Sequence record: ON190025.1
DNA: 64,000 nt
Direction: 5' to 3' (one strand)
The notes beneath the pieces are model-generated. The model had not been told where the DNA came from and searched no databases. It worked only from the letters and a program-made list of their open reading frames with translations. The translations under genes and the position numbers were made by a program. Below, one piece after another: positions 5,954-60,100 of this stretch; positions within the stretch are counted from its first letter, which is position 1, and every line of letters begins with the position of its first letter.

Positions 5954-6874
5954 TTATTTTCTAATGAAATATGTTTTAGTCGAGGCTTTCCCTTCGACCG
6001 TTTTATATGTGTAATTCGGTAATGTATCAGCATATCGTTTTACTAAACGATTGTATAGTTTTATTCTCGAATCACTGTCGTTTTTTATATCTCGCTCTGC
6101 ACTGAAATAAATTGTTTCTGGCTCTCGCTCGTCTATAAATTCACGCATACCGCTCATTACTGTCGCAAACACACCATACATATTGCCTCGACCTGTTGCG
6201 CTGTAAGTATAATCACCCGAACTGTTCATACCTAAGAACACAAGTTCCCATGCATCGTTTTGTTCTTGATACTGCATTGCAATCGCGTATTCGTCCCCGT
6301 TTACCGTGAACGTACCACCCCAACTGTGAATTCTCTTCTCAACCCAGTGTATTTTAGATGGTCGGTCAAATGCCTCAGTCAAGTTAACTGAAGATAACCA
6401 TTCACGCCATGTCTTCTTATTACCGATCTTGGCAAATGGGATATCGTCATGATCTAGCCACTGAGCCGAGCGGTCATATGACTGAGAAGTATCAAACCCT
6501 CTATAATCATCACCAACCCACAACCATTTGTGATGCCATATTTGGTTTACTTGACGTGGTTTGGAAACAACACCGTCTCTATAAGTAATCATCATACCCG
6601 CGGCTGGTTCTTGTACAGTATCAAATTCAACTGAATCGTAGAAAGCAACTCCACCTTTCTTGTAGTCAATTCGTACTACATTCGGAGTAAATTGTGAGTT
6701 TGCAATTGATACTTGAGTACGAGCATCAGCAACCATTTGCTTGAACTCATCGGGAACATAGTTAATGTGAACATATAATGAACCGCCAATGTCTTTACCC
6801 ACGCCCCACTTGCTGCGTTTTACTGCACTACCTTTTCGAGTTTTCAATGTAGCGCGTTCAAAAATTATGCTCAT
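5954..6874 (-). CDS. Putative internal head protein: Dnd-associated methyltransferase N-domain-like plus Alt-N-like domain
   Basis: N-half VGKDIGGSLYVH...IWHHKWLWV...KIGNKKTW; internal LTE|AFDRP; C-half homologous to ORF 51973; lies in a late operon. Confidence 0.6.
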   Translation of the reverse strand: MSIIFERATLKTRKGSAVKRSKWGVGKDIGGSLYVHINYVPDEFKQMVADARTQVSIANSQFTPNVVRIDYKKGGVAFYDSVEFDTVQEPAAGMMITYRDGVVSKPRQVNQIWHHKWLWVGDDYRGFDTSQSYDRSAQWLDHDDIPFAKIGNKKTWREWLSSVNLTEAFDRPSKIHWVEKRIHSWGGTFTVNGDEYAIAMQYQEQNDAWELVFLGMNSSGDYTYSATGRGNMYGVFATVMSGMREFIDEREPETIYFSAERDIKNDSDSRIKLYNRLVKRYADTLPNYTYKTVEGKASTKTYFIRK

Positions 6875-6876
6875 TA

Positions 6877-7470
6877 TTACCTCGTTGCTGCGTTTGTAAT
6901 ATTGCGAATCATACGAATTGCGTATTCAGTATCGCCAGTCATAGCCGATGACGCTGCTTTATCGACGTAAAATGTGCTATCTTCAATCATGTTCAAGTGA
7001 TGGTAAATCTCACGAAAATCATGACGGTCGTATTCTTTCACATTAAAACGAAACGCACCTGCCTGCTTATCTTCGTCATGAACACGCTTGTATTCATCTA
7101 CGACACGAATCATTTCGGTTGCGTATTTCTTCATTTCCATGTTATCAAGCTTTAAACGCTTTGCAGCTTTCATTACTTCGTCACGAGGACGTTCAAGCTC
7201 GATTACGTCTTTAAGAACATTCAGACTGTGAATTGTGTTCACTGCTGCACGCTCCATTCTTAGCTTATGATCTTCTAGTGACTTATTGTGCTTTCTAAGT
7301 TCACCCGATGCTGTCGCACTCGCGATCAAACCTGCAAACACACCCCAGAAGCCACCTTTGCGCTGCATACGCTTTTTAACTTCACCTTTCGAACCCGATG
7401 TTGCTGCTTTAAATTGAGCCCATCTACCGGTTTGTTTAGCTTTGTCCATTTCTGTTAAAAATTCTATCAT
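6877..7470 (-). CDS. Putative internal head protein (helical, Gly-rich hydrophobic segment)
   Basis: N-terminus MIEFLTE resembles a capsid-targeting sequence; first gene after late promoter 7493-7500. Confidence 0.55.
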   Translation of the reverse strand: MIEFLTEMDKAKQTGRWAQFKAATSGSKGEVKKRMQRKGGFWGVFAGLIASATASGELRKHNKSLEDHKLRMERAAVNTIHSLNVLKDVIELERPRDEVMKAAKRLKLDNMEMKKYATEMIRVVDEYKRVHDEDKQAGAFRFNVKEYDRHDFREIYHHLNMIEDSTFYVDKAASSAMTGDTEYAIRMIRNITNAATR

Positions 7471-7492
7471 TGTTAACCCCTTTGTTTACTAT

Positions 7493-7500
7493 TATTTAGA
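7493..7500 (-). promoter_or_regulatory. Late promoter variant TCTAAATA
   Basis: TATTTAGA on the plus strand, just downstream of terminator 7509-7536 in the direction of transcription. Confidence 0.7.
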
Positions 7501-7508
7501 CGCAAACG

Positions 7509-7536
7509 AAAAAAGGGTGACTTCGGTCACCCTTTT
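7509..7536 (-). terminator. Intrinsic terminator (UUCG-type loop)
   Basis: AAAAAGGGTGAC-TTCG-GTCACCCTTTT. Confidence 0.9.
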
Positions 7537-7548
7537 AAATTGGTTAAT

Positions 7549-8175
7549 TTAACCGTATACTGATTTGATATTGTCGAAAAACGCAGTTGAACCGTGTAGT
7601 TTCGCTACAACATACGATGCATTCTGACGAACAAGTTGTTTAACGTTCAGTTCTTTCAACTGCTCTTTTGACAAGTTCGCGCTATGTACAAGCGTAAGAA
7701 TAGAACGTGCGTGATCTGACAATGCAAGCGTTGAAATATAACGAGCTTGCTGTTTCGGTTCAAGCTTTTTAAATGCATCAACCGCTTGTGGACCCGCAAC
7801 AGCTACTGCACGCCCCAGACCAAGATTGAGAACACGTGTCAATAGAGATTCCATCCCTAATACAGGCTTACGTGGCGACTCGCGTTTTGGCATGAGTACT
7901 TCTAATTTACCGTCACCTTTCAACGTGTATACAGGAATCTCGGTGTGACCGAACGTTTCGAATCGAGTGACCATGATTTCAGGTGCATTCTGAACGTTAG
8001 CTTGAACACGACGACGAAGACGCTCATCATATTCACCGCCATTAAGTGAATATACAATCTCTGCAACTGTCAAGTCACGCTTTTCAAGCAATTGAATTAC
8101 TGCTTTGCGGAAGTTACGACGCTTAGGTGACTCGTTAGTTGCAAGTGCTTTACGTACGATGTCTAAATCTTTCAT
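7549..8175 (-). CDS. Early protein with probable N-terminal winged helix-turn-helix
   Basis: RKAVIQLLEKRDLTVAEIVYSL...RRRVQANV...PVYTL pattern; GAGAG RBS. Confidence 0.55.
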   Translation of the reverse strand: MKDLDIVRKALATNESPKRRNFRKAVIQLLEKRDLTVAEIVYSLNGGEYDERLRRRVQANVQNAPEIMVTRFETFGHTEIPVYTLKGDGKLEVLMPKRESPRKPVLGMESLLTRVLNLGLGRAVAVAGPQAVDAFKKLEPKQQARYISTLALSDHARSILTLVHSANLSKEQLKELNVKQLVRQNASYVVAKLHGSTAFFDNIKSVYG

Positions 8176-8190
8176 AATATATTTCTCTCA

Positions 8191-8457
8191 TTAAATTACG
8201 ATTGGCTCTTGAATAGCCATGAATGTCTTGCCAGTGAATTCTTGATATGCTTCATGAAAGCTGTCAAGTTCATCGTCAACAATTATTTTTTCACCAGTAC
8301 CAAATGAATATAAAATACTGTCATATTTACCTGTTGCAGTATTAAACATCGGTTCAGTTGTGAATTTAACGCCACACGGTGTATAAAACTCTCTAGGTTT
8401 TTCAACAGGAACTTGTACAGCGTTATGTTCAGCAAAAGCTGTTTCGAGTTTGTTCAT
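8191..8457 (-). CDS. Hypothetical early protein
   Basis: 88 aa, first gene after a class I promoter, GAGAG RBS. Confidence 0.75.
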   Translation of the reverse strand: MNKLETAFAEHNAVQVPVEKPREFYTPCGVKFTTEPMFNTATGKYDSILYSFGTGEKIIVDDELDSFHEAYQEFTGKTFMAIQEPIVI

Positions 8458-8523
8458 ATTCTGCTCTCTTAGTTATGTTGTGTTAACGATGACTATAATA
8501 AGCAAAAACATTTGAGTTGTCAA
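8458..8523 (-). promoter_or_regulatory. Class I early promoter
   Basis: TTGACA(8518-8523)-17-TATTAT(8495-8500), then AGTCATCG...AAGAGAGCAGAAT-ATG. Confidence 0.85.
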
Positions 8524-9012
8524 CTACTTTCTTCGCCATCTCTCAAGTTTTTCATCATATTCGCTATGCTTCCATAAGTCGAATACGATTGTACCTCTCT
8601 GAAACCACCAGACCAATGAAATAGTATCATTTAACTTAGGGTCTTTTGGGTTTTTCCCTGAATAAAATTCACTACTAGGGTGTGAGTGATAAATCGACTT
8701 TTTAACTGCGAACTTATACCCACCTTCAGGTTTACCGACTTCTTCTGGCGGGTATAAGTTACCTAGATACGCAACTTGATATACAGTGTTCTTGAATACG
8801 ATTCGACTTGAATCAATATTGAAGAGCAAGTTCTGATATTGAGCAGCATTCGCAGCAATCTTCCACGGGTGCTTCGGTTTCGTTTCTAGTAACTCATCGA
8901 TTTTCGGCTCAGGGATTAGTTTGGCTAGGTTATGATTACCCCACCCCTCTTCAAGTGATAAACTCAGTTCGATACCGTAAAGCGTGTTTTCATATTCATT
9001 AAATCGTAACAT
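8524..9012 (-). CDS. Putative internal head protein with HigB/RelE-like C-terminus
   Basis: MLRFNEY...LSLEE N-terminus; C-terminal YHSH...ISLVWWFQRGTIVFDLWKHSEYD. Confidence 0.45.
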   Translation of the reverse strand: MLRFNEYENTLYGIELSLSLEEGWGNHNLAKLIPEPKIDELLETKPKHPWKIAANAAQYQNLLFNIDSSRIVFKNTVYQVAYLGNLYPPEEVGKPEGGYKFAVKKSIYHSHPSSEFYSGKNPKDPKLNDTISLVWWFQRGTIVFDLWKHSEYDEKLERWRRK

Positions 9013-9015
9013 AAA

Positions 9016-9528
9016 TTACCTCAGATAAATGAAGCTGTTCGAAAGACGGTCGTGAACTAAAAGATGACCATTTCGCTTAACCCAATATTCAATCGTCTTC
9101 AATTCGTGAGAGTCGCGTCGACCTATATTCCAATCATGAATCACATCATGCGCAACTGGCTGATATAGCTCATCACCACGGCGATAAGTAGGCATCCATT
9201 TAGGCTTGAATTCGTCCTTGATTACTAATGTTACGTTTTCATCACCTAAAGGGGCATTAGCAGAAACACCTTCTAATTCTTTCTTAACGTCGTCTGAAAG
9301 CTCTTTGACTACAATCGCGTCCGATTCATCGACTGATTCACAGCGCGTCTCAGACTCGATTACAGAGCATTCTAGTGGTAGTTCTTTAACCTCGCGTAGC
9401 TCGTGTGTGAATAACTCGTCGATCATCTTGCTTTTAGTCAGAGATTTATCAAGTTCGATGTCGTAGTACTCTTTTGCAAATTCTGCAACTACGCGCTTGG
9501 TTTGTTTCTTTAGATATTCTTTAATCAT
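9016..9528 (-). CDS. Inh paralogue
   Basis: EFAKEYYDIELDKSLTKSKM closely matches EFAKEYYGIELDRRKSKGAM of inh (3694); C-terminal KTIEYWVKRNGHLLVHDRLSNSF. Confidence 0.8.
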   Translation of the reverse strand: MIKEYLKKQTKRVVAEFAKEYYDIELDKSLTKSKMIDELFTHELREVKELPLECSVIESETRCESVDESDAIVVKELSDDVKKELEGVSANAPLGDENVTLVIKDEFKPKWMPTYRRGDELYQPVAHDVIHDWNIGRRDSHELKTIEYWVKRNGHLLVHDRLSNSFIYLR

Positions 9529-9537
9529 AGTTTTACC

Positions 9538-9747
9538 TTAGCATTCAATTGTTACCCACACATTTCGATTTAAATCGAAAAATGTAAGTTCATTATCTGC
9601 ACCGTTTTCATTTTTACGTTGTTCTTCTCGATTGCAATCAAGATGTGGTAGATAATGCTTGCATAAAGTCGCGTGATATTTCTTGCCTTTATGCTCAAAC
9701 TTAAAGCAACCATCTTTCATCTTGTAAAACATTTCGTCTCTTGTCAT
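9538..9747 (-). CDS. Small hypothetical protein (SH3/WYL_2-like pattern)
   Basis: GCFKFEHKGKKYHAT...TFFDLNRNVWVT; first gene of a late operon. Confidence 0.5.
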   Translation of the reverse strand: MTRDEMFYKMKDGCFKFEHKGKKYHATLCKHYLPHLDCNREEQRKNENGADNELTFFDLNRNVWVTIEC

Positions 9748-9760
9748 GAATTTAGACCTC

Positions 9761-9786
9761 TATAAATACAGTTATACATATTTAGA
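9761..9786. promoter_or_regulatory. Back-to-back late promoters
   Basis: TATAAATA (+, 9761-9768) before uvsW; TCTAAATA (-, 9779-9786) before the 9747 operon. Confidence 0.75.
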
Positions 9787-9811
9787 CAAAACTCGCATAG
9801 AGAGAAAAATC

Positions 9812-11341
9812 ATGACATGTGACATTAAAATTGAGTACCACGATGAGAGTTATGCGAGAGTCGTAGCCGAGCCAAGCATCACTCACGAAATGATTGACTA
9901 TTTCTCATTTCTAACAGATGGGTACAAATTTAACCCGAAATTTAAAATGGGCATTTGGGATGGCAAAATTCGACTAATGACGTATCAAGGTCTATTGCCA
10001 TACGGTCTAGTCGGACAAGCTAAAGCGTTTGCATCAAATATGATGTATACGATTGAAACCGATCCAATGCTAGATCCGATTGAGAAAATTTCTCGTGAAG
10101 ATTTCGAAGCATGGGTTGAGTCTATTGACATCTACTCAGGGTCGAATAAGATTTCACCGTATTGGTATCAGATGGACTCTGTGTTTCACGGAATTAACAA
10201 CCAACACAGTCTATTGAATCTACCAACATCTGCGGGTAAATCATTAATTCAGTCGCTGATTACTAAATGGTTCTTAGCACAAGAAGAGCACGAACTTCAG
10301 AAAGTATTAGTGATTGTACCTACAACTGCACTTGTCCAGCAAATGCGCGATGACTTCTTAGATTATCGTTTATTCGAACACAACGACATTTATCAGATTC
10401 GTGGTGGGGTTGATCGAGACGCAATCGGTGACTGCCGAATCGTTGTATCTACATGGCAATCTGCTGTAAAACAACCGAAAGAATGGTTTGACCAATTCGG
10501 TATGCTTTTAGTCGATGAGTGTCACTTGGCAACAGGTAAGTCATTAGACGGTATAATCAAGAAAATGACAAACTGTGAATACAAAATCGGTCTTACTGGC
10601 TCACTTCGAGACGGTAAAGCGAATATTCTACAGTACGTTGGTTCATTCGGTGATATTTTCCGACCTGTTTCAACTGCACAGCTAATGGAAGAAGGGCAAG
10701 TAACAGATCTGAAGATAAACTGTTTAATGCTTGAATACCCACAGCCGTTACGTGATGAAATGAAGGGCAGTTCGTATCAAGAAGAAATGAAATTCATTCT
10801 TGAGAACAAGCAGCGAAATCGTTACTTGATTAAGCTTGCGCATCATTTAAGCGCGAAGAAAGGCGAAAATACGTTATTGCTATTCAAGAACATCAAACAC
10901 GGTAAATTGCTTTACGAAGCGTTGAAGAGCGTATATGACCCAGAGAAAGTGTTCTACGTATCTGGTGAAACTAAAACTGACGACCGTACGCATGTTAAGA
11001 AGATTGCAGAAGATATTGACGGGGCTATTATCGTAGCATCGTATGGTGTATTCTCGACTGGTATCAGTATCAAGAAACTACACAACGTAATTTACGCACA
11101 TCCCACAAAATCAAAAATACTCACGCTGCAAAGTATTGGGCGTATTCTTCGTAAGCACGGTTCTAAAGTTACTGCAAAATTGTTTGACATTATTGATAAT
11201 TTGGGTGTCAAGTCAAAGCGCAAGAATGCTAAGAATCCATATAGTCATGTTAACTATACGCTAAAGCATGGCATGGCTCGCATTGAGCTTTACAACCAAG
11301 AGAATTTTCGCTATGCTGTAAAAAAGGTTGACTTGGAATAG
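9812..11341 (+). CDS. uvsW: UvsW DNA helicase (SF2)
   Basis: FSFLTDGYKFNPKFKMGIWDGKIRL, LPTSAGKS, DECH and QSIGRILR motifs. Start moved to 9812 by RBS and T4 alignment. Confidence 0.97.
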   Translation: MTCDIKIEYHDESYARVVAEPSITHEMIDYFSFLTDGYKFNPKFKMGIWDGKIRLMTYQGLLPYGLVGQAKAFASNMMYTIETDPMLDPIEKISREDFEAWVESIDIYSGSNKISPYWYQMDSVFHGINNQHSLLNLPTSAGKSLIQSLITKWFLAQEEHELQKVLVIVPTTALVQQMRDDFLDYRLFEHNDIYQIRGGVDRDAIGDCRIVVSTWQSAVKQPKEWFDQFGMLLVDECHLATGKSLDGIIKKMTNCEYKIGLTGSLRDGKANILQYVGSFGDIFRPVSTAQLMEEGQVTDLKINCLMLEYPQPLRDEMKGSSYQEEMKFILENKQRNRYLIKLAHHLSAKKGENTLLLFKNIKHGKLLYEALKSVYDPEKVFYVSGETKTDDRTHVKKIAEDIDGAIIVASYGVFSTGISIKKLHNVIYAHPTKSKILTLQSIGRILRKHGSKVTAKLFDIIDNLGVKSKRKNAKNPYSHVNYTLKHGMARIELYNQENFRYAVKKVDLE

Positions 11342-11345
11342 CGAA

Positions 11346-12143
11346 ATGAATTACGAACGAATTTATACCGAAATAATCGAAAATGCAGTGAACAGAGGGT
11401 GGACAAAAGAGTCTGCCCCTTGTTACACCGAACGGCATCACATTTTACCAAAGCGTGCCGGCGGAACGGACGATGAAAGTAATCTCGTTACGCTAACTGC
11501 AAGAGAACACATTATTGCACATCTTGTTCTAGCTAAAGCTAGAGGTGGGATATATTGGAGATGCGCTTCTGGTATGTTGATGAACGGTAATGGGTATAAT
11601 CGAGCCAATTCAGTTTCGTCAAGAACGTTAGCGTCAATTCGCGAGAAACACGCAGAACACATGAGTGATACTATGAAAGGTAACACGAATGCAGCGGGTG
11701 TTGTTTTTTCGGACGAACGTAAGAAAAATATTTCGAATGCAAAGAAGGGACGTTTTTCTGAGAAGCAGAGACGCGCTCTTGAGAAAAACTGGGATAGCGC
11801 GAAAGGTAGAAAAGATTCTGACGAAACTAGAAAGAAGCGTTCAGATGCAATGAAATCTAACGGGTTTGTGCCAGTTAAAGCAGGAGATTTCGAAACATGC
11901 TCGAACGCGGGTAAGGCAAATAAAGGAGTTAAGAAGTCGTTTCGTTCAGAAACACACATCGAGAACCTTAAAAAGTCTTTACCACGAGGAAAAGATCATT
12001 CGTGTGCGAAATCACTATACGTAGATGGGGTTTCGTACGATACAATGAAATCTGCCGCCGAAGCCTTAGGTATAACTGTTGATGCTATTCGCTATCGCTG
12101 TAAATCAAAATCTAAGAAGTTTGAGAATTATCAATTCGCATAG
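11346..12143 (+). mobile_element. Free-standing HNH homing endonuclease (Mob-like, NUMOD3 repeats)
   Basis: ERHHILPK-x-GGTDDESNLV-x-LTAREHIIAH; NUMOD3-like SDERKKNIS and SDETRKKRS; C-terminal HTH. Confidence 0.9.
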
Positions 12144-12148
12144 ATACG

Positions 12149-12177
12149 AAAAAGGGAGCAAATTGCTCCCTTTTTTT
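12149..12177. terminator. Bidirectional terminator
   Basis: A5-GGGAGC-AAATT-GCTCCC-T7. Confidence 0.9.
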
Positions 12178-12178
12178 A

Positions 12179-12289
12179 TTAGTCTGAAAAGATTGCTGAG
12201 AGAATCGCACCGATTAACTCAAAAAATAATTCAAATGGCGCCCATAGCCAGTCGAAGAACCCGCGATCTCGTTTACGATTCTTACTCAT
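12179..12289 (-). CDS. 36-aa basic/amphipathic peptide (not in ORF track)
   Basis: MSKNRKRDRGFFDWLWAPFELFFELIGAILSAIFSD*; starts 4 nt after the uvsY.-2 stop and ends at the terminator. Confidence 0.6.
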   Translation of the reverse strand: MSKNRKRDRGFFDWLWAPFELFFELIGAILSAIFSD

Positions 12290-12293
12290 ATCT

Positions 12294-12464
12294 TTACCCG
12301 TTTAGTAGTTGTGTTTCTACAAGTTGCGTTTCGCCACCAGACTCAGAAATCGACATTTCTGATAAATGTTGCTGGCATTGACCTGCATGGACTGTGCCTT
12401 GTGGCGTATCAATAGTGACATCGCCTTCTTTAATAGGTTGTTTACATACAACACAATGTGCCAT
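12294..12464 (-). CDS. uvsY.-2: UvsY.-2-like protein
   Basis: CVVCKQPI...GTVHAGQC...SES...ETQLL matches T4 uvsY.-2. Confidence 0.88.
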   Translation of the reverse strand: MAHCVVCKQPIKEGDVTIDTPQGTVHAGQCQQHLSEMSISESGGETQLVETQLLNG

Positions 12465-12628
12465 TAGTCTAACCCCTTTTTTATAAGTGATTGATAGAGA
12501 TAAAACCCATCGACTTGTAAAGAGCCATGAAGTTCCCATCCCTCGTTAAGTAGTTTCTGCACTTCCTCTTCAAAAGTTCTTGAATTATTGCCATGCACTA
12601 CTTTGTATTTAATGTAATCAGTCTGCAT
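12464..12628 (-). CDS. 54-aa DUF1737-like protein (not in ORF track)
   Basis: MQTDYIKYKVVHGNNSRTFEEEVQKLLNEGWELHGSL...; TAATG coupling to the next gene. Confidence 0.65.
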   Translation of the reverse strand: MQTDYIKYKVVHGNNSRTFEEEVQKLLNEGWELHGSLQVDGFYLYQSLIKKGLD

Positions 12629-12629
12629 A

Positions 12630-13453: not shown

Positions 13454-13471
13454 AATAACCTCGCGTCATCA

Positions 13472-20071: not shown

Positions 20072-20079
20072 TATTTAGA
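20072..20079 (-). promoter_or_regulatory. Late promoter variant TCTAAATA for gene 34
   Basis: TATTTAGA on the plus strand, 40 nt upstream of the gp34 ATG. Confidence 0.7.
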
Positions 20080-38097: not shown

Positions 38098-38301
38098 ATG
38101 AAATCTAAAGGTTTTACTCTGATCGAATTGATTGTTTTGATTGCGATTCTAGGGATTCTAGCGTCGGTAGCTGCTGGTACGTTGTTTGGGGCTGAACAAC
38201 CTACATCTTACAGTACTCAACCGCAATCAGAGACTTATGAAATTGACGGTCAGTTAATGCAATGTACTCCCGTGCAAGCAGTATGGGACGATGATTTTTA
38301 A
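38098..38301 (+). CDS. Type IV prepilin-like small protein
   Basis: MKSKG|FTLIELIVLIAILGILASVA class III signal peptide with Glu+5. Confidence 0.88.
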   Translation: MKSKGFTLIELIVLIAILGILASVAAGTLFGAEQPTSYSTQPQSETYEIDGQLMQCTPVQAVWDDDF

Positions 38302-51914: not shown

Positions 51915-51948
51915 AAAGGGGGCTTATGCCCCTTTTTGCGTATAAATA
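51915..51948 (+). promoter_or_regulatory. Terminator followed by late promoter TATAAATA
   Basis: Hairpin 51915-51937; TATAAATA at 51941-51948. Confidence 0.85.
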
Positions 51949-51972: not shown

Positions 51973-52854
51973 ATGATCATTTTTGAACATGGAGAAACGT
52001 TAATTGAAGCGTTCGACCGACCAGTGCCATATAGATGGGATGCTATGCACAATGAAGCTAGTTTCACAGTAGGCGGGACCCAATACCTAGCAACGATTCA
52101 AGATCGCGAAACGCCACGCGGTGTAAGCATATATGTAGCTTTCCAACGAAAAGATCGTGAAACAGGCAATTGGACGCACACGCTTGCAAAAGGATCGCCT
52201 AAAGATGCCATGACAGTATTAAGTACGATTCTAGCTGCTACGTTTGAAAAAGCGTCTGAGATTAACCCTGATGAGATTGCGTTTAGTGCGTACTCAGATG
52301 AAGATCGCAATGATGCAGACAAACGTTTCCGACTGTACAAACGTATGGCTGAGCGATACGCGAACAAGATGGACTATACGGTTCACGTCATGGGAAATAG
52401 CTTCACATTGAAGAACAATAACCCACCGAAAGTTCGCAGACTGCATAACGACGGGATTCACAAAGAAGAAGAACTAACGTACGTTATTTTCCCAAATACT
52501 AACGCATTCACTTGGGCTAAGTTATTCTGGTTAGACAACGACGGAGATTTCATTCGATTTGGATTGCCACACGGTCGAGTTTACATAGAGCGAAAATCGA
52601 GTGATGTTATTCACATTGAAGCAACAACTCCGCGTGGTAAGTTCAATAACTTAGATTCGGCTGACATTTGGCTGTCAATGCTAGGTGATATTACAGTTCG
52701 CACTAAAACAGGTCGTACATTTGATATTAGTGAAAAAGGTGCGGCGCTTGATGCAGGTGATATGATTTTATGTGAGCAAGATACATTGTATTACGTCGAA
52801 TCAGAAGAAGATTTTAGTAATATCTGGGGTTATGAACTAGAAGATATTCGATAA
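51973..52854 (+). CDS. Putative internal head protein with Alt-N-like domain
   Basis: LIE|AFDRP...FTVGG...IAFSA...RFRLYKRMAERYA, homologous to the C-half of ORF 5954. Confidence 0.65.
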   Translation: MIIFEHGETLIEAFDRPVPYRWDAMHNEASFTVGGTQYLATIQDRETPRGVSIYVAFQRKDRETGNWTHTLAKGSPKDAMTVLSTILAATFEKASEINPDEIAFSAYSDEDRNDADKRFRLYKRMAERYANKMDYTVHVMGNSFTLKNNNPPKVRRLHNDGIHKEEELTYVIFPNTNAFTWAKLFWLDNDGDFIRFGLPHGRVYIERKSSDVIHIEATTPRGKFNNLDSADIWLSMLGDITVRTKTGRTFDISEKGAALDAGDMILCEQDTLYYVESEEDFSNIWGYELEDIR

Positions 52855-52857
52855 AAG

Positions 52858-52883
52858 AAAAGGGAGCAATTTGCTCCCTTTTT
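52858..52883. terminator. Bidirectional terminator
   Basis: A4-GGGAGC-AATTT-GCTCCC-T5; reverse complement identical to 12149-12174. Confidence 0.9.
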
Positions 52884-52886
52884 CGA

Positions 52887-54515
52887 TCATGGTGTTAGAG
52901 GACTACGCTCTTTTGTTAGTCTATCTGCATCGACATCTACATCAACAGAACGCATGAAATTAGCTACTTCTGAAAGCTCGTGTAAACGGTCTTGCTTTTT
53001 GAAAGCAGACAATACACCTTGCTTCGTATCTTCTTTGATTTTCAATCGAATTACAGCGTCGTATTCAGACATTTGAACAACGTCAGCTTCAAACATCGTA
53101 TTACGGTTGATGATAATCTCTTTTGAGTCTTTCATACCGTGTTTACCTGAAGCTAAAACAGGCAAGCCGCTCGCTTCTATGATGAATACAACATTCATTT
53201 TCTTATCTGACTCAAGCAGAGAACGCATATCTGATTTACTATTCTTAGCAGTTGAATCAATGATGTTCTTAGAGCTTGATTCAACGAACTTACAAGCAAC
53301 AAGAGGGTCGATTGACGTTGAGATAAACGCAGTCGAAACAAACGAGCCAGATTCAAGAATAGAGCGCACATGTTTACTTGACATTTCACAGCCACGATAT
53401 AACGTCATTCCACCAGCAATCATACCAGCTTCAGAAAACGCTTGGTCGATGCGTGAGACAATCTGTGATTCTTTATCAACACCAGTTCCGTGTAATAACT
53501 CTTCATTCACCTTCCATGAAAAACGAGTCGCGGAGTATCTAGCAATAGCCGCTTGTGTAAGTGACGATAGACCCGCAAATGAATCTTCCTGCATAAGTTG
53601 CAAAGAAAGACGTTCATACTGACTTGCATGAGCACGTGAGCGAGATTCCATGATACTATTCAGAACGCTTTGAGGCTTCTTCGATTCGGCGATATATGAA
53701 TTCAATGAAACTGCCACAGTTTCAAGATTCAAACTCATATCAATTAAACCTTTCGCAGCATTAGCAAGAACATGTTCATTGCTTTCATTCAATTGAGAAC
53801 GAACAGACGAACTTACACGCGCTTCATATTGAGGCATTTGAAGAACATCATTTGGAACACGTGCAGCGGGGTTTTCTTCTACCCATTTACCTAGTACGTC
53901 ATCTTCATAGTCGTCATACGCAGCATCGGCAGTTACGATAATCGTTTTCTTGCTTGAAATATCAGTTTCGAGTGACATTTTTAACGCAATATCGTTAATT
54001 GTTTCTTCAGATGCTTCGAATAGCTTATCGGCATTATACCCTGGTTTGGTTACAATAAAGAAGCTGTAATCTTGCGAAATTTCTTCACCACCCACGCCAA
54101 TAATCTTAGTTGTATCACAGCCGTAACGTAGCTTTTTAAACAACGTTTTAACGCGCAAGTCGAACATCTTACCCGTACCTAGTTTCTGCACACGCATTGA
54201 AACGACATTCGCACGACGTTTGATCATGAAATCTTGAACCACTTTAACAATAGTTTGTTGAAGCTTTTGTTCATCTCCCATTTCACGAATAGTAACACCG
54301 CCTTTTTTGCCGCGCATTGCTGATACAGTACAGAACCAAGAACGTTTACCGCGATTTCCGATATCTGATTTTGTTTTAGTTGTGAACGAAACAACGATGT
54401 CTCTGGCTTCGCCTTTCATGTCGATCACAAAGAATTTGTTTTCTTTGGTCGAGCGAGCCGGATAATAGTCGTACGTTGCGCTCATGTTTTCATTTAATTG
54501 TTGAAATCCAATCAT
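52887..54515 (-). CDS. alt: Alt-like ADP-ribosyltransferase
   Basis: MIGFQQLNE N-terminus; ART motifs LYRG, FISTS and SKEII; late promoter upstream. Confidence 0.78.
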   Translation of the reverse strand: MIGFQQLNENMSATYDYYPARSTKENKFFVIDMKGEARDIVVSFTTKTKSDIGNRGKRSWFCTVSAMRGKKGGVTIREMGDEQKLQQTIVKVVQDFMIKRRANVVSMRVQKLGTGKMFDLRVKTLFKKLRYGCDTTKIIGVGGEEISQDYSFFIVTKPGYNADKLFEASEETINDIALKMSLETDISSKKTIIVTADAAYDDYEDDVLGKWVEENPAARVPNDVLQMPQYEARVSSSVRSQLNESNEHVLANAAKGLIDMSLNLETVAVSLNSYIAESKKPQSVLNSIMESRSRAHASQYERLSLQLMQEDSFAGLSSLTQAAIARYSATRFSWKVNEELLHGTGVDKESQIVSRIDQAFSEAGMIAGGMTLYRGCEMSSKHVRSILESGSFVSTAFISTSIDPLVACKFVESSSKNIIDSTAKNSKSDMRSLLESDKKMNVVFIIEASGLPVLASGKHGMKDSKEIIINRNTMFEADVVQMSEYDAVIRLKIKEDTKQGVLSAFKKQDRLHELSEVANFMRSVDVDVDADRLTKERSPLTP

Positions 54516-54546
54516 TTTATAGACTCACCCTTTAGAAATATATGTG

Positions 54547-54554
54547 TATTTATG
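54547..54554 (-). promoter_or_regulatory. Late promoter variant CATAAATA
   Basis: TATTTATG on the plus strand, 31 nt upstream of the alt-like ATG. Confidence 0.55.
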
Positions 54555-54605
54555 ATTGCTCATAACACCCGTTGAAATTATTTTAAACTTTTTGTCAGAA
54601 AAAGG

Positions 54606-54673
54606 TTGCACGAAAAACAATATAGACCTAATATAGCTTCATCGAAACGAATTAACGAACAGAGAGAATAATT
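54606..54673 (+). promoter_or_regulatory. Class I early promoter with leader
   Basis: TTGCAC-17-TAATAT, CATCGAAACGA, AGAGAGAATAATT-ATG. Confidence 0.85.
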
Positions 54674-55177
54674 ATGAATGTACAATCACTGACTAACGAA
54701 CAACTTGCTGCTTACTTCAACATGACAGTAGACTCAAACGGTTTTCAAGCTGTTGATGAGAAAGGTCGTCGTCATTATTTAACAGACCTTCGTCAGAAAG
54801 CAATGAAATCTGCTAAGACGAAGAAAGCACGTAAAGTACGCGCTGAAGCACAGCCTAAAGCAACTGCTGAAGAACTACTTGCAGAACTACAAAGCGAGTC
54901 TTCAGATTTTTGGGAGATTCGAGAATCTCAGCCTGGTATGGACTCTGAAGAGCACGGTCTAAATGTATACGTGACTACTGGACTGCCTGATAGTCATCGC
55001 GTAATGATTCGTTCTAGTGTATTATCAAATAAGGAACTTGATCGCGAACTTGGACATCTAAACCCAGCAAAGCATAAAGAAGTACAGCGACGCAAAAAAT
55101 CGACAATCATATTTTCGAATCGTTCAGCGAAAGAAATCGTTGAAATTATCGAAAAAGTGAAGTCAATTAGTGAATAA
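54674..55177 (+). CDS. Early protein, possible MotA C-terminal (double-wing)-like DNA-binding domain
   Basis: Basic linker KKARKVR; C-terminal IFSNRSAKEIVEII resembles T4 MotA LDIKRSAENIEAVI. Confidence 0.4.
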   Translation: MNVQSLTNEQLAAYFNMTVDSNGFQAVDEKGRRHYLTDLRQKAMKSAKTKKARKVRAEAQPKATAEELLAELQSESSDFWEIRESQPGMDSEEHGLNVYVTTGLPDSHRVMIRSSVLSNKELDRELGHLNPAKHKEVQRRKKSTIIFSNRSAKEIVEIIEKVKSISE

Positions 55178-55208
55178 TTTGAAATAATTCACGAAAAAAG
55201 TAGTTTTA

Positions 55209-55285
55209 GGGATTGACAATAACACGTCAATCCCCGATAATAAACACATCAAGACGAGATACGAACTACTTAAAGAGAGAACATT
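55209..55285 (+). promoter_or_regulatory. Class I early promoter with 9-bp inverted repeat
   Basis: TTGACA-17-GATAAT; GGGATTGAC/GTCAATCCC; CATCAAGACGA and AAGAGAGAACATT leader. Confidence 0.85.
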
Positions 55286-56113
55286 ATGACAATCACTAAA
55301 GCAGAAATGAAAGCTATCGCAATCGACCTTATGTCTGGTAACAACTTGATGAAGCGCGATCTGATTGCAGAAGGTTGGTCATTTGAATTTTCAAAACGTA
55401 AAGCTGCACTAGGTGATTGTAACTACCGTACTAAAACGCTACGTATTTCTGAAGAATTCTTGAACGCTCGTACTAAAGAAGAGCAAATCAACACAATCAC
55501 TCACGAAATGGCTCATGCGATTGCTTACACTGATTACAACGAACGTGGTCACGGTGCTATCTGGAAGCGTGTACACCGTCAACTAGGTGGCGATGCAAAG
55601 CGTTGCTCAACTGTATCTAACCCTGATGCTGTAGATAGCAAGTACGTTGTTTTCTTCGAAAACGCTCAAGGTGAACTTGAAGTAGTTCAGAAAATGGATC
55701 GTTTGACTAAGCGTTTTCAACCAGTACACATCAAGGCTCTATACTTGAAAGGTCGTAAAGCTGAAACTGAAGGTCAACTTCGTTGCGTTGCAACATCAAC
55801 ATTCAACGCTATCAAAGCAGATCACGAAGCTAAGAAAGCTGAAAATACTAAAGCAGTTGAACCTGTAGCAGCACCTGCACCGAAAGCTGAAAAGAAAGCT
55901 GAAGCGCCTAAGCCTGCTAAGAAAGTAAACGCACGTGGTCAAGCTGCTCGTGACGCAATCGCAGAAATCGTAATGAATACTACTCACAAAGGTTGTAAGT
56001 CAGTGTCATTTGAACAGCGTGGTAAATACAAAGATTGGTACATCATTATTGAACTAGAAGCTCACACAATCGAAAAGCGTCTAGACACTTTCAAAAAATC
56101 TCACGGTTTATAA
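55286..56113 (+). CDS. SprT-like zinc metalloprotease
   Basis: ALGDC...RISE, HEMAH, GHGAIWK...GG...C; Ala/Lys/Pro linker. Confidence 0.85.
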   Translation: MTITKAEMKAIAIDLMSGNNLMKRDLIAEGWSFEFSKRKAALGDCNYRTKTLRISEEFLNARTKEEQINTITHEMAHAIAYTDYNERGHGAIWKRVHRQLGGDAKRCSTVSNPDAVDSKYVVFFENAQGELEVVQKMDRLTKRFQPVHIKALYLKGRKAETEGQLRCVATSTFNAIKADHEAKKAENTKAVEPVAAPAPKAEKKAEAPKPAKKVNARGQAARDAIAEIVMNTTHKGCKSVSFEQRGKYKDWYIIIELEAHTIEKRLDTFKKSHGL

Positions 56114-56131
56114 CATTGTTGTTCTCTTTAT

Positions 56132-56153
56132 AGCCCCGAAAGGGGCTTTTTTT
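56132..56153 (+). terminator. Intrinsic terminator
   Basis: AGCCCC-GAAA-GGGGC-T7. Confidence 0.92.
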
Positions 56154-56160
56154 GGTTTGA

Positions 56161-56221
56161 GCGGAAAAATTCCGTCTCATCTTAGTAGTATTAGTGCTTT
56201 TAGTAATATTAGAAGTATTAG
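56161..56221. repeat. Second copy (inverted) of the 61-bp 9-mer array element
   Basis: Reverse complement equals 13512-13572 with one mismatch. Confidence 0.95.
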
Positions 56222-56229
56222 TAAGATTT

Positions 56230-56259
56230 GTTTAATAACCACCTTGGCAGACGTATAAT
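56230..56259 (+). promoter_or_regulatory. Class II promoter
   Basis: GTTTAA-18-TATAAT. Confidence 0.7.
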
Positions 56260-56277
56260 ATAGGTCGAGGTGAAGAA

Positions 56278-56517
56278 ATGATAACGATATACACAATTCC
56301 CAACTGTGACGGCTGTCGTCACGCAATTTCCCTCTGTAAGTTCAAAAACGTCCCGTACACTGTAATAGAGTTACAGTCTCAATCTGATATCGATAAATTG
56401 CATGAGAAACTTGGTGGGGTGCGCAACATTCGCGTGCCTCTTGCTATGCATGGTGATACATACATAGGTCATCTTCCAGAACTCAAGCAATGGGTTGATA
56501 ACCAGACATATAAATAA
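56278..56517 (+). CDS. Glutaredoxin (NrdC/NrdH-like)
   Basis: IYTIPNCDGC, RVPLAM and YIG motifs. Confidence 0.85.
   Translation: MITIYTIPNCDGCRHAISLCKFKNVPYTVIELQSQSDIDKLHEKLGGVRNIRVPLAMHGDTYIGHLPELKQWVDNQTYK
56509..56516 (+). promoter_or_regulatory. Late promoter TATAAATA
   Basis: Upstream of gp24. Confidence 0.85.
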
Positions 56518-56572
56518 AAGAAAATAACATTCTCTCCGCTGAAATGCGGCAATAAATTAAAGGAATCATACA

Positions 56573-57469
56573 ATGACTGTATCTAATAGTAACGGTTTAC
56601 CAGACATTGTTTCTGTTCAAAAACGACTATACCCGTTAATATTTACGCAAATCGTTTCAGAACAGCCAACAACTCAACCGGTTGCGACTGCATTCGGTTT
56701 CAAATCTGTAGCTGAAGCTGATGACGCGAGTGGGTGGCTTCCCCATGGTTTCAGACTTGATCGCTGGTATGCACAAGTTCAATCATCAAAGCTAAAAACT
56801 GAAATCTCTCTTGAAACAATTCAAGATATGCAAGCACTTGGTGTCAATGAATCGATTATCACAGATTCTATTGCTGACCAAATCGCAGATGACATCAACA
56901 CTAATATCATCGACTCACTAAACAGCATTTCAACTGTTGGTTCTGCATTGACATTAGCAGGTACAAATGACTTTGAAAAGGGTCAAGATTTATACGCTAA
57001 AGTTCACGTGGCTGCTGCTGAAATTGAAAAAACAACTGGCTGTCAAGCTACATATGTTGTGGCTGGTGGCGACTGTTTCGGTCTTTTAACAGGTTGTGGT
57101 GTTGTTCAGCGAATCGGTGATACAAACGTATATAAAGCATGGTCTGGGTTATACATCGTTCATGACAAGTATGCAACGACTGACTACGTAACAATTGGTG
57201 TTAAGAAAGATCTTGGTGATTATGAAATCTCAAGTTTAGTATTCAGCCCATACAACTTTGACAAAGCAACAGACGCTGGTATTGCATATCAATATAAAAC
57301 ACAAGACCCGCAATCATTCCACCCGATTTACGGTGTTATTGCTCGATACGCATTGACCGTTGCACCATTAGAAGACAATCAAACGGGTGCAGTTGAAATC
57401 GATTGGGATAATCTTGGTGTTCTTGCGAACAGTTCTAAGCTGTCATACACTCACGCAGTAACGGTATAA
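56573..57469 (+). CDS. 24: Capsid vertex protein gp24-like
   Basis: EQPTTQPVA, QSSKLKTEISLETIQD and VFSPY; gp23/24 fold motifs; 298 aa. Confidence 0.85.
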   Translation: MTVSNSNGLPDIVSVQKRLYPLIFTQIVSEQPTTQPVATAFGFKSVAEADDASGWLPHGFRLDRWYAQVQSSKLKTEISLETIQDMQALGVNESIITDSIADQIADDINTNIIDSLNSISTVGSALTLAGTNDFEKGQDLYAKVHVAAAEIEKTTGCQATYVVAGGDCFGLLTGCGVVQRIGDTNVYKAWSGLYIVHDKYATTDYVTIGVKKDLGDYEISSLVFSPYNFDKATDAGIAYQYKTQDPQSFHPIYGVIARYALTVAPLEDNQTGAVEIDWDNLGVLANSSKLSYTHAVTV

Positions 57470-57477
57470 GGTGTGAC

Positions 57478-57990
57478 ATGAAAAATCATTATGTAGATAA
57501 TAAAGCTCTGTACGCATCGTTGTGCGAATGGAAAAACGAAATGAAGAAACACCCTGATGCTGCAATTCCCGTCCCTGACGTGGTAGCAATCAGCATCATG
57601 AAGATCAGCGAGAATTTATCTCGCCGTTACAATTTTAGTGGGTATACTGCAACATGGAAAGAAGAGATGATTGGTGACGCAATCGAACATTGCTTGCGCT
57701 ATATCAAGAACTTCGACACTGACAAGTATAACAACCCACACGCTTATATCACTCGTATTTGCTTCAATGCGTTTGTACAACGTATTAAGAAAGAAAGAAA
57801 AGATACAGCGATTAAATATAAAGTATTCTTATGTGATTCGTCTAACTACTCGATTGATGGTGAAGAAACTGATTTCGATTTTCTTCAACAGATGTTAGAA
57901 CGTGTCAATTCTTACGAATCTGGCAAGACTGCTAAAGCTCAACCAGATGAACAGAAAGAACCACTTAACTTACAGAAATTTTACGATTAA
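57478..57990 (+). CDS. 55: Late sigma factor gp55
   Basis: YVDNK, NFSGYT-x-TWKEEMIGDA, NFD-x-x-KY-x-NPHAYIT and AFVQRIKKE motifs. Confidence 0.97.
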   Translation: MKNHYVDNKALYASLCEWKNEMKKHPDAAIPVPDVVAISIMKISENLSRRYNFSGYTATWKEEMIGDAIEHCLRYIKNFDTDKYNNPHAYITRICFNAFVQRIKKERKDTAIKYKVFLCDSSNYSIDGEETDFDFLQQMLERVNSYESGKTAKAQPDEQKEPLNLQKFYD

Positions 57991-57999
57991 GGAATTAAC

Positions 58000-59445
58000 A
58001 TGTTAGGTAACTTTGACTCATTTCTGAGTGAAAATCGCCGTCAAACTCAGGGTGGTAAAATCTACCCTAAGTTTGGTCAAGTTATTGTTGAGCTAGGCAC
58101 TGCATCTACTGAGTTCAGCAAAGGCAAAGGCGTTGAAACAACTATCGGCATGATGGAAAAGGCAAATGAGCTTAAATCTATCATGAGTACTAAACTTGCT
58201 GAAGATAAAAACGTCGATGAGAAAAACTTCGATATTAATCTGAGCGAGAACGTAAGCACAATCAACTTGCTTATGGAAAACGAATTCTTATCATTGCCAG
58301 CACATGAGCTACAGCAAGTTAAGTCTATGATCATGTGTACTGAAGCTCGTCTTCCTAGCATCGTGATTAAAGGCGGTTACTTAGATCAGGTTGTTGCCGA
58401 AGCGACTAAGCTTGGTTATAAGAAAAATGACATTCACGTTGTTTTCCCTATGCGTGAAATGAAAATTAATCTTGCTGATTCTGATAAGCTTGTAATTGAA
58501 TCGCTATCAATTGATGACAATTCAGCATCTGAAATACTGTCAATGGCTGAAAACATCGAGCTTGGTGACGTTTATGTGACTGTTGAATCGGTTGATTCAA
58601 AAGCCGAACTGTCTGACATCACTGAGATGAAAATCAAGTCTGGTAAAAATGCACTTACATTGGCTGCACTGAACCGTAAAATCATGGACTTGTTCATTGT
58701 AAAAGAAGCGAAAGACGTATCATACGCTCGTGAACGTAAAGACGATACTGGCTTGCCGATGCTAGAAGGATTCAAAGCATACGATCTGAAACAGAACATC
58801 ACCATGATTGAACATGCTCAGAACGTTTTCACGAAAGAAATCGCGACTGCGCCACTGACATCGACTGCATGGCAAAATCTTGTTGATGTGAAAGAAGCGT
58901 ATTTTGACAACGGTTGGAAGCTGAAACACAACAACACAAGTATTGTTCTAACAAACGCGGAACATGCTATGCGTGCAGGTCGTGTGTGTGAAGAATATCG
59001 CGTTGAATTATCTGAAGCAGGTTACCCGCTTCTTGATATGATTGCGATGATGGAACGTAAAGGCGTGAAACGTTTTGACTGTAAAGCATTTGCTGAAGCT
59101 ATGCTATCGTTCGATGGTTGTGTTACCCCTGAGCGTCAAACAGTGACTGCATTTTCAACAATGGCTGAGTCGAATCGTGTATTCCACCCGAATATCATGT
59201 CTAGTCTACGTCCAGTGACTGAAATGGTTGATGATGTTGATTCACTGATTCGTGCTCTTGCAAATGATCAGTTCAGTTCATTCAAGGTTGGTCAATCTTT
59301 CTCTGAAGCGATGCTTGATCAAGAAACACTTTACTCGATGATGGAAAACATCGTTGAAAACGGCGTTGACGTTTCGGTTGACGGTACTTTGATTGAGTTC
59401 AGCGTTAACGCAACGAACTATCTGATTGATATTGATATTAAGTAG
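58000..59445 (+). CDS. Putative internal head protein with degenerate P-loop kinase-like N-domain
   Basis: MLGNFDSFLSE; GGKIYPKFGQV, LPSIVI and LGYKKNDIHVVF motifs; Walker A degenerate. Confidence 0.5.
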   Translation: MLGNFDSFLSENRRQTQGGKIYPKFGQVIVELGTASTEFSKGKGVETTIGMMEKANELKSIMSTKLAEDKNVDEKNFDINLSENVSTINLLMENEFLSLPAHELQQVKSMIMCTEARLPSIVIKGGYLDQVVAEATKLGYKKNDIHVVFPMREMKINLADSDKLVIESLSIDDNSASEILSMAENIELGDVYVTVESVDSKAELSDITEMKIKSGKNALTLAALNRKIMDLFIVKEAKDVSYARERKDDTGLPMLEGFKAYDLKQNITMIEHAQNVFTKEIATAPLTSTAWQNLVDVKEAYFDNGWKLKHNNTSIVLTNAEHAMRAGRVCEEYRVELSEAGYPLLDMIAMMERKGVKRFDCKAFAEAMLSFDGCVTPERQTVTAFSTMAESNRVFHPNIMSSLRPVTEMVDDVDSLIRALANDQFSSFKVGQSFSEAMLDQETLYSMMENIVENGVDVSVDGTLIEFSVNATNYLIDIDIK

Positions 59446-59452
59446 GTGCACA

Positions 59453-60100
59453 ATGAAGAAATTTGGTGAATTTTTAACTGAAGTACAAAAGTACAGTTCC
59501 GCAGCAACGTCGATACGTGGTAAAGAAGTAGCAGCACTGGTTAAACTATACAAGAAAGGTATGTTTACACCGGGTGGTACTGCTCTTGACTATGGTGCTG
59601 GTAAATACGGTCGTAACGCTGAATTTTTACGCTCTGAAGGCATCAAAACGTATGCATATGACAAATTCAATGGTACATCTGCTGATGGTTGGACTGATGT
59701 CAGTCTGACTATCCCAAATGGGGAATCATTCGATACGGCGTTTACTTCTTACGTACTGAACGTTGTACCTGAAGAAGTCGAAGCAGAGATTATTCGTGAT
59801 GTTGAGTCTCGTGCTCGTGGTAAAGTTTTCCATATCACTCGCGGTACTGACATTACTCAAACTGTGTTGAACGTGATCAGTGGTAAAAGCAAAAACGATA
59901 TCATGATGCAATTCATTGCTCAAGAATATCCAGATCTGTCTATGCAGATTGAAGCAGGTAATGCAACAAGAGACGTGGCTAAAGAAATTGCTACTCGCGG
60001 TGTAGTTACAGCGAAAGACAGCTTTCAACGTATTCCAGACCTTTCAAAGTACGGTTACAAGAAATCTGGTTCAGGTGCTTCGGTAGTTTGGACAAAATAA
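59453..60100 (+). CDS. Class I SAM-dependent methyltransferase with capsid-targeting N-terminus
   Basis: MKKFGEFLTE; LDYGAGKYG (motif I), AYD, FDTAFTSYVLNVV; AGGTG RBS. Confidence 0.88.
   Translation: MKKFGEFLTEVQKYSSAATSIRGKEVAALVKLYKKGMFTPGGTALDYGAGKYGRNAEFLRSEGIKTYAYDKFNGTSADGWTDVSLTIPNGESFDTAFTSYVLNVVPEEVEAEIIRDVESRARGKVFHITRGTDITQTVLNVISGKSKNDIMMQFIAQEYPDLSMQIEAGNATRDVAKEIATRGVVTAKDSFQRIPDLSKYGYKKSGSGASVVWTK

Follow-up and report, generated by a model that had tools for sequence, protein, structure and literature searches.

Do two hypothetical proteins of a T4-like vibriophage, encoded in separate transcription units, belong to one system, and what would that system do? We addressed this question in a stretch of 64,000 nucleotides from sequence record ON190025.1 (hereafter, the window; window position x corresponds to record position x + 124000). 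A megablast search placed the window in Vibrio phage PVA23 (100% identity), a KVP40-like phage of the Straboviridae, genus Schizotequatrovirus, with ValKK3, VH7D, and phi-ST2 as relatives at 99% and KVP40 at ~87% identity. The two proteins are the products of open reading frame (ORF) 5954, here called ORF A (PVA23_192, 306 aa, 5954..6874, minus strand), and ORF 59453, here called ORF B (PVA23_273, 215 aa, 59453..60100, plus strand); the record annotates both as hypothetical protein. An initial annotation, made from the sequence alone, had read them as the two halves of a Dnd-associated methyltransferase, encoded as separate late proteins targeted to the capsid. Checking the sequence confirmed both ORFs and the N-termini claimed for them, MSIIFE and MKKFGEFLTE, and a Shine-Dalgarno sequence was found before the ATG of each. 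As argued below, ORF A and ORF B are best explained as two parts, encoded apart, of a conserved effector with two modules, which are elsewhere fused, adjacent, or embedded in polyvalent proteins.

Judged by its model and its motifs, ORF B is a complete class I S-adenosylmethionine (SAM)-dependent methyltransferase with a Rossmann-like fold, preceded by the 10-residue leader MKKFGEFLTE. AlphaFold2 modeled the protein with a pLDDT of 90.6, and Foldseek returned 187 methyltransferase matches in the PDB with E < 1e-3. The residues invariant in its family are D46-Y-G-A-G-K (motif I), D70 after strand 2, and N103-V, to which the family adds conserved motifs of its own (GGTSI, HITRN, and FQRIP) and a helical insert. 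This family is large and consists of solo proteins of ~215–240 residues, encoded on phage and metagenome contigs. After TIGR04096, discussed below, its nearest named family is that of the TehB-type methyltransferases, which act on chalcogen compounds.

ORF A turned out to comprise two domains behind its 6-residue leader, MSIIFE (AlphaFold2 mean pLDDT, 86.8). The second, C-terminal domain is unrelated to the first and had been missed in the initial annotation; we return to it later. The first, which we call nd, spans residues ~9–165 (6380..6850, minus strand). It contains the motifs LKTxKGSxxKRSKWGVGKDIGGSLYVH, EFDxxxEP, and IWHHKWLWVGDDYxGF. In an alignment of 66 diverse sequences, eight residues were invariant (K27, P90, H114, H115, W117, Y124, F127, and S136), and the signature read IWHHKWLWV-DDY-GFD. 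A HMMER scan of 1.84 billion representative proteins yielded 1126 relatives, many of them solo proteins of ~160–170 residues and many others embedded in proteins of 600–6451 residues. Between the PVA23 and KVP40 groups, nd is ~96% identical (ORF A residues 1–167 compared with KVP40.0371). No Pfam model matched nd, and profiles of 15 and 66 sequences found no match to it among PDB sequences. From the literature searched, nd appears to be a previously undescribed domain of ~155 residues with the signature WHHKW. When the full ORF A model was compared with the PDB by Foldseek, the matches were dominated by the C-terminal domain, and a WRKY/AFT2-like match was weak (probability 0.75–0.8) and set aside. 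We also considered nd as a PLD/HKD nuclease (H-x-K...D) and rejected the idea: the spacing is one off, the secondary structure predicted for nd disagrees, and the best 50 Foldseek matches listed included no PLD structure.

Fusions, adjacent genes, and polyvalent proteins argue that nd and the methyltransferase are functionally linked in nature. The clearest fusion is a metagenomic protein of 387 aa (P0158), in which residues 15–166 are 40% identical to ORF A 9–162 (E 5e-31) and residues 174–371 are 42% identical to ORF B 6–202 (E 2e-46). Among 80 nd loci from IMG/VR, both modules lay in one ORF in 19, and the methyltransferase was the very next gene in 8 (0–73 nt away); none of the 80 had a methyltransferase nearby but non-adjacent. 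A methyltransferase of the ORF B type was also present in ~35 of the best ~150 nd representatives. In the giant proteins checked, it adjoins nd in either order. The nd-bearing giants reach 3000–6451 residues, and P0167 also contains LPD38, an Eco57I-type methylase, and SNF2, while P0201 contains ART-PolyVal. It has been proposed that polyvalent proteins of this kind enter the cell together with the injected phage or plasmid DNA, and solo versions encoded near structural genes were predicted to be early-injected effectors (PMC5512222); the passages of that paper retrieved by term searches describe neither nd nor the pairing of nd with a methyltransferase. In the phage database, 51 records contained nd and 49 the methyltransferase, every one of them from a Vibrio schizoT4-like phage. 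The two records with nd only were of 157–159 kb, and all 49 full-length records carried both genes, a co-occurrence that is weak evidence on its own as it concerns one lineage only. As a side observation, the linker of P0158 (residues 168–180; locus L008, 3218–4381) keeps a leader-like F-V-F-E, aligned with F-L-T-E of ORF B, and a prohead protease might cut this fusion into two proteins.

Next to this linkage stands the matter of the leaders. In T4, the gp21 protease cuts behind the Glu of an L/I-x-E motif. A stretch as short as residues 1–10 of IPIII is enough to direct a protein to the head; within it, positions 4 and 7 matter for this targeting and positions 8 and 10 for processing. Alt loses a propeptide of 7 residues (PMC9026906). 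The ORF B leader has F4, F7, and L8-T9-E10. That of ORF A has I4-F5-E6, and is thus shorter than the 10-residue targeting sequence and near the 7 residues of Alt. The initial annotation had taken such N-termini as a sign of packaging. The motif in itself is common, and its weight comes from comparative data and not from two proteins alone. First, a hydrophobic-x-E motif preceded nd in 55 of 68 N-terminal copies with room for a leader, versus 17 of 74 embedded copies (Fisher 2e-12, a value that is only indicative, as homologues cannot be counted as independent). Another class of solo nd proteins is leaderless, the domain beginning at the N-terminus itself. Second, 91 of 120 ORF B relatives had the motif within their first 14 residues, typically as MK-x-x-(D/E)-(F/L/I)-(L/I)-x-E. 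Third, the leaders were kept across relatives of 35–45% identity while the flanking residues varied. Fourth, two adjacent pairs bear a leader on both partners, MITFKRFLVE with MITFKEYMLE in one (L118) and ..YVKLVES with ..FVKLVES in the other (L148); six other adjacent pairs bear it on neither partner.

Within the window, leaders combining an aromatic residue with (L/I)xE occurred in 7 of 22 proteins encoded in units with a late-type promoter versus 2 of 72 others (p = 4e-4, for a pattern defined post hoc). This group of seven consists of the major capsid protein, the homologue of Alt, PVA23_193, PVA23_265, PVA23_272, ORF A, and ORF B, Alt being a T4 protein that is packaged in the head. Taken together, the comparative data support the view that the leaders of ORF A and ORF B behave like the capsid-targeting sequences and prohead-protease propeptides of T4, and PVA23 probably injects both modules with its DNA.

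The claim that both genes lie in late operons is likewise supported, by promoter-like motifs and terminators that frame both units. The canonical T4-type late promoter, TATAAATA, occurs in the window in plus-strand orientation only, with five copies. Of these, four precede gp23, uvsW, PVA23_265, and gp24 by 32–64 nt, and the fifth (22009) is inside the helicase-loader gene, ~330 nt upstream of the gene 32 homologue. The copy at 56509..56516 heads the ORF B unit, gp24-gp55-PVA23_272-ORF B, in which the gaps are 7–9 nt and ORF B comes last. PVA23_272 (481 aa, 58000..59445, plus strand) has the leader MLGNFDSFLSE and belongs to no recognizable family. Directly after ORF B comes a terminator, AAAAGGGTTGC-TTCG-GCAACCCTTTTT (60118..60144, plus strand), a strong hairpin with a T-run that was absent from the consensus terminator scan and was read directly from the sequence.

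No canonical TATAAATA was found on the minus strand near ORF A; the variant TCTAAATA is there instead. It has six copies in the window, at 643, 3656, 7493-7500(-), 9779-9786(-), 20072-20079(-), and 31654, and five of the six stand 23–47 nt ahead of a start codon in the matching orientation, before inh, PVA23_193, PVA23_198, the short tail fibre gene, and PVA23_224. From this placement, TCTAAATA looks like a genuine late-promoter variant in PVA23. The ORF A unit thus reads, in order, an intrinsic terminator (7511..7536), TCTAAATA (7493..7500), PVA23_193 (6877..7470), ORF A as second gene, and an intrinsic terminator (5864..5889), all on the minus strand. PVA23_193 carries LTE at residues 5–7. 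An AAAGGGG Shine-Dalgarno sequence precedes the ATG at 7470 and none precedes the annotated start at 7449; the true start is probably at 7470 (MIEFLTE...), 21 nt upstream of the annotated one and 23 nt downstream of TCTAAATA.

How do the two modules relate to TIGR04096 (dnd_rel_methyl, 'DNA phosphorothioation-associated putative methyltransferase'), of which they had been called the halves? For this family, NCBIfam sets a curated cut-off of 150 bits, and true members from Planctomycetota genomes, taken for comparison, scored 552–612 bits. In direct hmmscan searches, ORF A had no match in NCBIfam and the match of ORF B to TIGR04096 was insignificant (E 0.12, 11.1 bits); neither protein matched anything significantly in Pfam or PADLOC. 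The relation showed only in family-wise and profile–profile searches. By hmmscan, 15 of 26 ORF A relatives matched TIGR04096 at positions ~320–465 of 478 (best, 1.2e-10), and 56 of 70 ORF B relatives matched it, always in the N-terminal part (stretches within positions 11–153; best, 2.6e-7). By hhalign against TIGR04096 members, the 66-sequence nd profile scored 95.7% (E 9e-9; ORF A 21–126 to positions 320–432) and the ORF B family 95% (E 3.6e-8; ORF B 27–110 to positions 19–90). The resemblance is therefore real but remote, visible at the level of families and profiles and not in single proteins, which score 0 and 11 bits.

These alignments also revealed the architecture of TIGR04096, ~480 residues made up of an N-terminal methyltransferase, a central helical region, and a C-terminal nd-like domain; the initial annotation had this order reversed. 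The central region (positions ~150–320, ~170 residues) has no counterpart in ORF A or ORF B. Of the 'halves', what stands is that both modules have homologues in TIGR04096; the phage proteins are not members, staying below 150 bits, and the central region is unmatched. In addition, nd of ORF A is far closer to a solo partner domain of TIGR04096 (E ~1e-40) than to the C-terminal domain of TIGR04096 itself, in which the invariant His-His of nd has become Leu-Leu.

This partner domain was found in bacteria. A first genome scan with strict KVP40-type motifs gave no bacterial nd relative, and a broader alignment then found some. In Planctomycetota, true TIGR04096 genes either have a solo nd gene as neighbour, in divergent or tandem orientation, or carry an additional nd as a fusion (loci L033, L022, L012, L013, L018, L039, L042, and L048). 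The solo nd keeps the His-His that TIGR04096 has lost; in the bacterial system, a degenerate copy of the domain thus stands beside an intact one. In six Planctomycetota loci, we scanned the ORFs that lie up to 10 kb from TIGR04096. Three of these ORFs matched TIGR04095, 'DNA phosphorothioation system restriction enzyme' (1.9e-166), and others matched DndD, DndA, PAPS-reductase-type (DndC-like) proteins, and a PLD-type antiphage nuclease; PADLOC models added DndB-like, SNF2 (ZorD/DpdE-like), and PbeA-like neighbours. The association of TIGR04096 with dnd loci stated in the initial annotation was thus borne out in Planctomycetota. For such loci, a reappraisal of Dnd systems reports HKD-helicase restriction components as well as cytosine methylases, and its passages retrieved by term search do not describe a methyltransferase of the TIGR04096 type (PMC10853773). 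The Planctomycetota arrangement appears to be a multi-gene version of phosphorothioate-linked defence that has so far gone undescribed.

On balance, we lean towards the following reading. KVP40-like phages would deliver nd and the methyltransferase as separate, leader-tagged proteins of the head core, which are trimmed, injected, and methylate a target early in infection. Each component would carry a short T4-type propeptide ending in (L/I)-x-E and be transcribed from a late-type promoter. Both proteins would enter the prohead core, be trimmed after Glu6 and Glu10, respectively, by a gp21-type protease, and be injected with the DNA. Early in infection, the methyltransferase would then act on a target bound or prepared by nd; possible targets are a phosphorothioate sulfur, a defence protein, or RNA. 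The pair may copy or pre-empt the 'self' function of a host system of the TIGR04096/TIGR04095 type, and so shield phage DNA or disable restriction. As the bacterial counterpart lies beside a helicase-nuclease restriction enzyme, an economical guess is that the phage version counterfeits or blocks self-recognition.

Several observations weigh against this reading. In 53 of the 80 viral nd loci, no such methyltransferase lies within 10 kb. In PVA23 itself, ORF A and ORF B are 53 kb apart and nd of ORF A is fused to a different partner domain, so the two PVA23 proteins need not act together. Of the 94 window proteins, 20 contain a bare (L/I)xE within their first 12 residues, a base rate of ~21%. 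No virion proteome of a KVP40-like phage was found in the searchable literature, and packaging is what we infer from the leaders. ORF B follows gp55, which belongs to the early/middle genes in T4, and may hence be made early too; since gp55 is needed before late transcription, the ORF B unit probably has an additional, earlier promoter. No PADLOC model matches TIGR04096, nd, ORF A, or ORF B. Motif IV of DNA amino-methylases, (S/D/N)PP(Y/F/W), is absent from ORF B, in which the position reads SYVLNVVPE; methylation of a DNA base nitrogen is therefore an unlikely chemistry. TIGR04096 likewise lacks the motif, its position reading GYVLNVIED. Finally, some neighbours and fusions of relatives hint at RNA, as detailed below.

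The base rate of the motif, the place of ORF B after gp55, and the distance between the genes would all suit ordinary cytoplasmic enzymes that are not packaged and act independently, with leaders that are structural or incidental; AlphaFold also puts ORF B residues 4–18 in a helix. We regard this as rather unlikely, since leaders are missing from embedded copies, are concerted on adjacent partners, and are conserved amid varying flanks, and since late-type promoters precede both units.

A more specific role for the injected pair would be to counter or mimic phosphorothioate immunity (Dnd, Ssp, and Pbe), for example by sulfur methylation or by self-marking of phage DNA. The bacterial loci described above favour it, in which TIGR04096 and a solo nd lie beside TIGR04095, DndA, DndD, DndC-like, DndB-like, and PbeA-like genes, as does the kinship of ORF B with the chalcogen-acting TehB type. 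In addition, the sole anti-Dnd phage protein found in the literature is a kinase (PMC12345140) and thus works differently, which leaves the niche open. Yet the pair is widespread in polyvalent proteins of phages and plasmids, well beyond phosphorothioate-bearing hosts. TIGR04095 is an ordinary helicase-nuclease that may merely share defence islands with dnd, and no dnd-type or TIGR04095 gene is annotated within the 64-kb window. We therefore hold it as a tentative idea at best. Equally speculative is its evolutionary form, in which the heads of T4-like vibriophages would carry a pair of nd and methyltransferase that either derives from, or gave rise to, the self-marking half of a restriction system linked to phosphorothioation; once injected, this pair would set the host's self mark on phage DNA or chemically neutralize phosphorothioate sensing.

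Alternatively, the pair could act on RNA, either tRNA or another host RNA, in repair, modification, or sabotage. A T4-type RNA ligase 1 is encoded two genes away from one ORF B relative (L005, 5698–13838), which also has TROVE and Thg1 genes in its vicinity, and the fusion P0158 (L008, 217–5395) has an RNA ligase and a SpoU methylase among its neighbours. Among other proteins, NFACT-R and a nucleotidyltransferase occur as fusion partners of nd; Rsr and RNA ligase occur within 10 kb of TIGR04096 in Planctomycetota loci; and in the phage, a gene for a CCA-adding enzyme is 2.4 kb from ORF A. Motif IV of ORF B is also of a non-DNA type. However, these neighbourhoods are few and may mirror the make-up of variable regions of T4-like phages or of defence islands. 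In polyvalent proteins, the pair accompanies DNA-directed modules (N6A methylase and SNF2), and its bacterial partner is a DNA restriction enzyme. Action on RNA thus seems improbable to us, and delivery of the pair from the head remains the reading that we prefer.

We next consider the C-terminal domain of ORF A (residues 166–306; 5957..6379, minus strand). It matched DUF6934 (PF22028) with E 7e-5 and 23.3 bits, below the gathering score of 27. Its model resembled GNATs of the RimL, SpeG, and Naa types (Foldseek probability 0.98–1.0, E from 1.6e-3, TM-scores 0.3–0.45). A G-R-G loop before a long helix, where GNATs bind the acetyl-CoA pyrophosphate, is present in the PVA23-type domain and lost in the KVP40 type. 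After residue 167, identity between ORF A and KVP40.0371 drops to ~20%, a sharp mosaic boundary within the gene; by this comparison, the C-terminal half is a swapped or fast-evolving, hypervariable cassette. In the window, PVA23_265 (293 aa, 51973..52854, plus strand) carries a paralogous DUF6934-like domain (hmmsearch with the C-domain profile, E 2e-12), and TATAAATA lies 32 nt upstream of it (51941-51948). It is a further candidate for a packaged protein. Its leader, MIIFE, recurs unchanged in many solo nd proteins, and its gene converges on the Alt gene. When compared with viral models by Foldseek, the ORF A model matched Alt-like ADP-ribosyltransferases of several T4-like phages over 140–170 columns, as well as phage proteins with Zeta-toxin, deaminase, and ParB domains, which suggests a module common to packaged multi-domain phage proteins. 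The link that these matches suggest between the C-domain and the N-terminal region of Alt was not confirmed by BLASTP, HMM, or hhalign comparisons with the window's own Alt and is a lead only.

That ORF A and its DUF6934-bearing relatives might chiefly be structural or packing components inside the head, with vestigial enzyme homology, would accord with the recurrence of the domain in the late, leader-bearing PVA23_265, with the matches to Alt-like packaged and other multi-domain phage proteins, and with a hypervariable C-domain lacking the conserved acetyl-CoA loop in the KVP40 group, but is very unlikely given the ~96% conservation of nd between phage groups, its eight residues, His-His included, invariant in 66 sequences, and the retention of all SAM-binding motifs by ORF B.

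Other genes of the region complete the picture. The Alt-like ADP-ribosyltransferase (52887..54515, minus strand; identified by annotation and by Pfam PF03496 on orthologues) has the leader MIGFQQLNE and is preceded by CATAAATA at 54554-54547(-). A prohead core protein protease (PVA23_184/185) and a scaffold protein (PVA23_186) are annotated just upstream of the window. Incidentally, we noticed that PVA23_237 (67 residues, 38098-38301, plus strand) starts with MKSKGFTLIELIVLIA, a classic prepilin-type motif for cleavage and methylation (G|FTLIE) with a hydrophobic helix behind it; it may be a pilin-like phage protein.

What would these findings add? The targeting leaders of T4, the polyvalent proteins, and the name of TIGR04096 were already known. 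In the searchable literature, nd, its partnership with the methyltransferase, its tie to loci with TIGR04096 and TIGR04095, and its leader-tagged solo form in T4-like phages appear undescribed; no mention was found there of TIGR04096, KVP40.0066, or KVP40.0371. With 1126 representative relatives, nd shows an obligate-looking partnership with a distinctive methyltransferase. The same module recurs in three settings: bacterial defence islands, giant polyvalent proteins, and leader-tagged solo proteins of T4-like phages. T4-type leaders mark whole enzyme families across metagenomes, which suggests an injected arsenal wider than Alt and the IP proteins, and the leader pattern could be used for mining packaged effectors. 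If action against phosphorothioate-linked defence were true, the pair would be the first injected anti-phosphorothioate or anti-TIGR04095 effector and would give a first function to a domain present in more than 1000 representative protein clusters. A target in host phosphorothioate-linked restriction would make this a new counter-defence mechanism and would reveal the role of TIGR04096.

Lastly, we compared the two proteins with the known systems they resemble. ORF B shares its fold and SAM-binding motifs with TehB and Methyltransf_23, but the match is at motif level only (E ~0.01–0.5). The C-domain of ORF A matches GNATs by Foldseek and DUF6934 weakly, but with E only ~1e-3, a sub-threshold Pfam score, and a loop that is missing in the KVP40 type. 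With TIGR04096, ORF B shares motif I, DYGxG(K/H)(Y/G), and VLNV(I/V) of the N-terminal methyltransferase, and nd shares GVGK...YVH and PDF(D/E)...P of the C-terminal domain. In contrast to TIGR04096, the phage modules are split over two distant genes without the central region, bear added leaders and a GNAT-like domain, and have no dnd context annotated in the window. Compared with the T4 internal proteins IPI–III, the mature sequences of ORF A and ORF B are unrelated, the cargo would be an enzyme pair instead of a small basic inhibitor, and packaging would follow from the leaders. Yet both proteins share with the internal proteins and Alt a short propeptide ending in L/I-x-E, ORF B has hydrophobic or aromatic residues at positions 4 and 7, and the phage has late-type promoters and genes for a protease and a scaffold. 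Polyvalent proteins, of phages as well as conjugative elements (Iyer et al. 2017, PMC5512222), including injected methylases of the P1 DarB type, differ in that the PVA23 modules are solo and would be delivered by the T4 head-core route, and ORF B is unlike the EcoKI/TaqI-like adenine methylase described in the passages of that paper retrieved. What they share with the phage is the nd-methyltransferase block itself, which occurs inside polyvalent proteins of 3000–6000 residues, beside LPD38, ART-PolyVal, and the N6A-methylase-SNF2 dyad.

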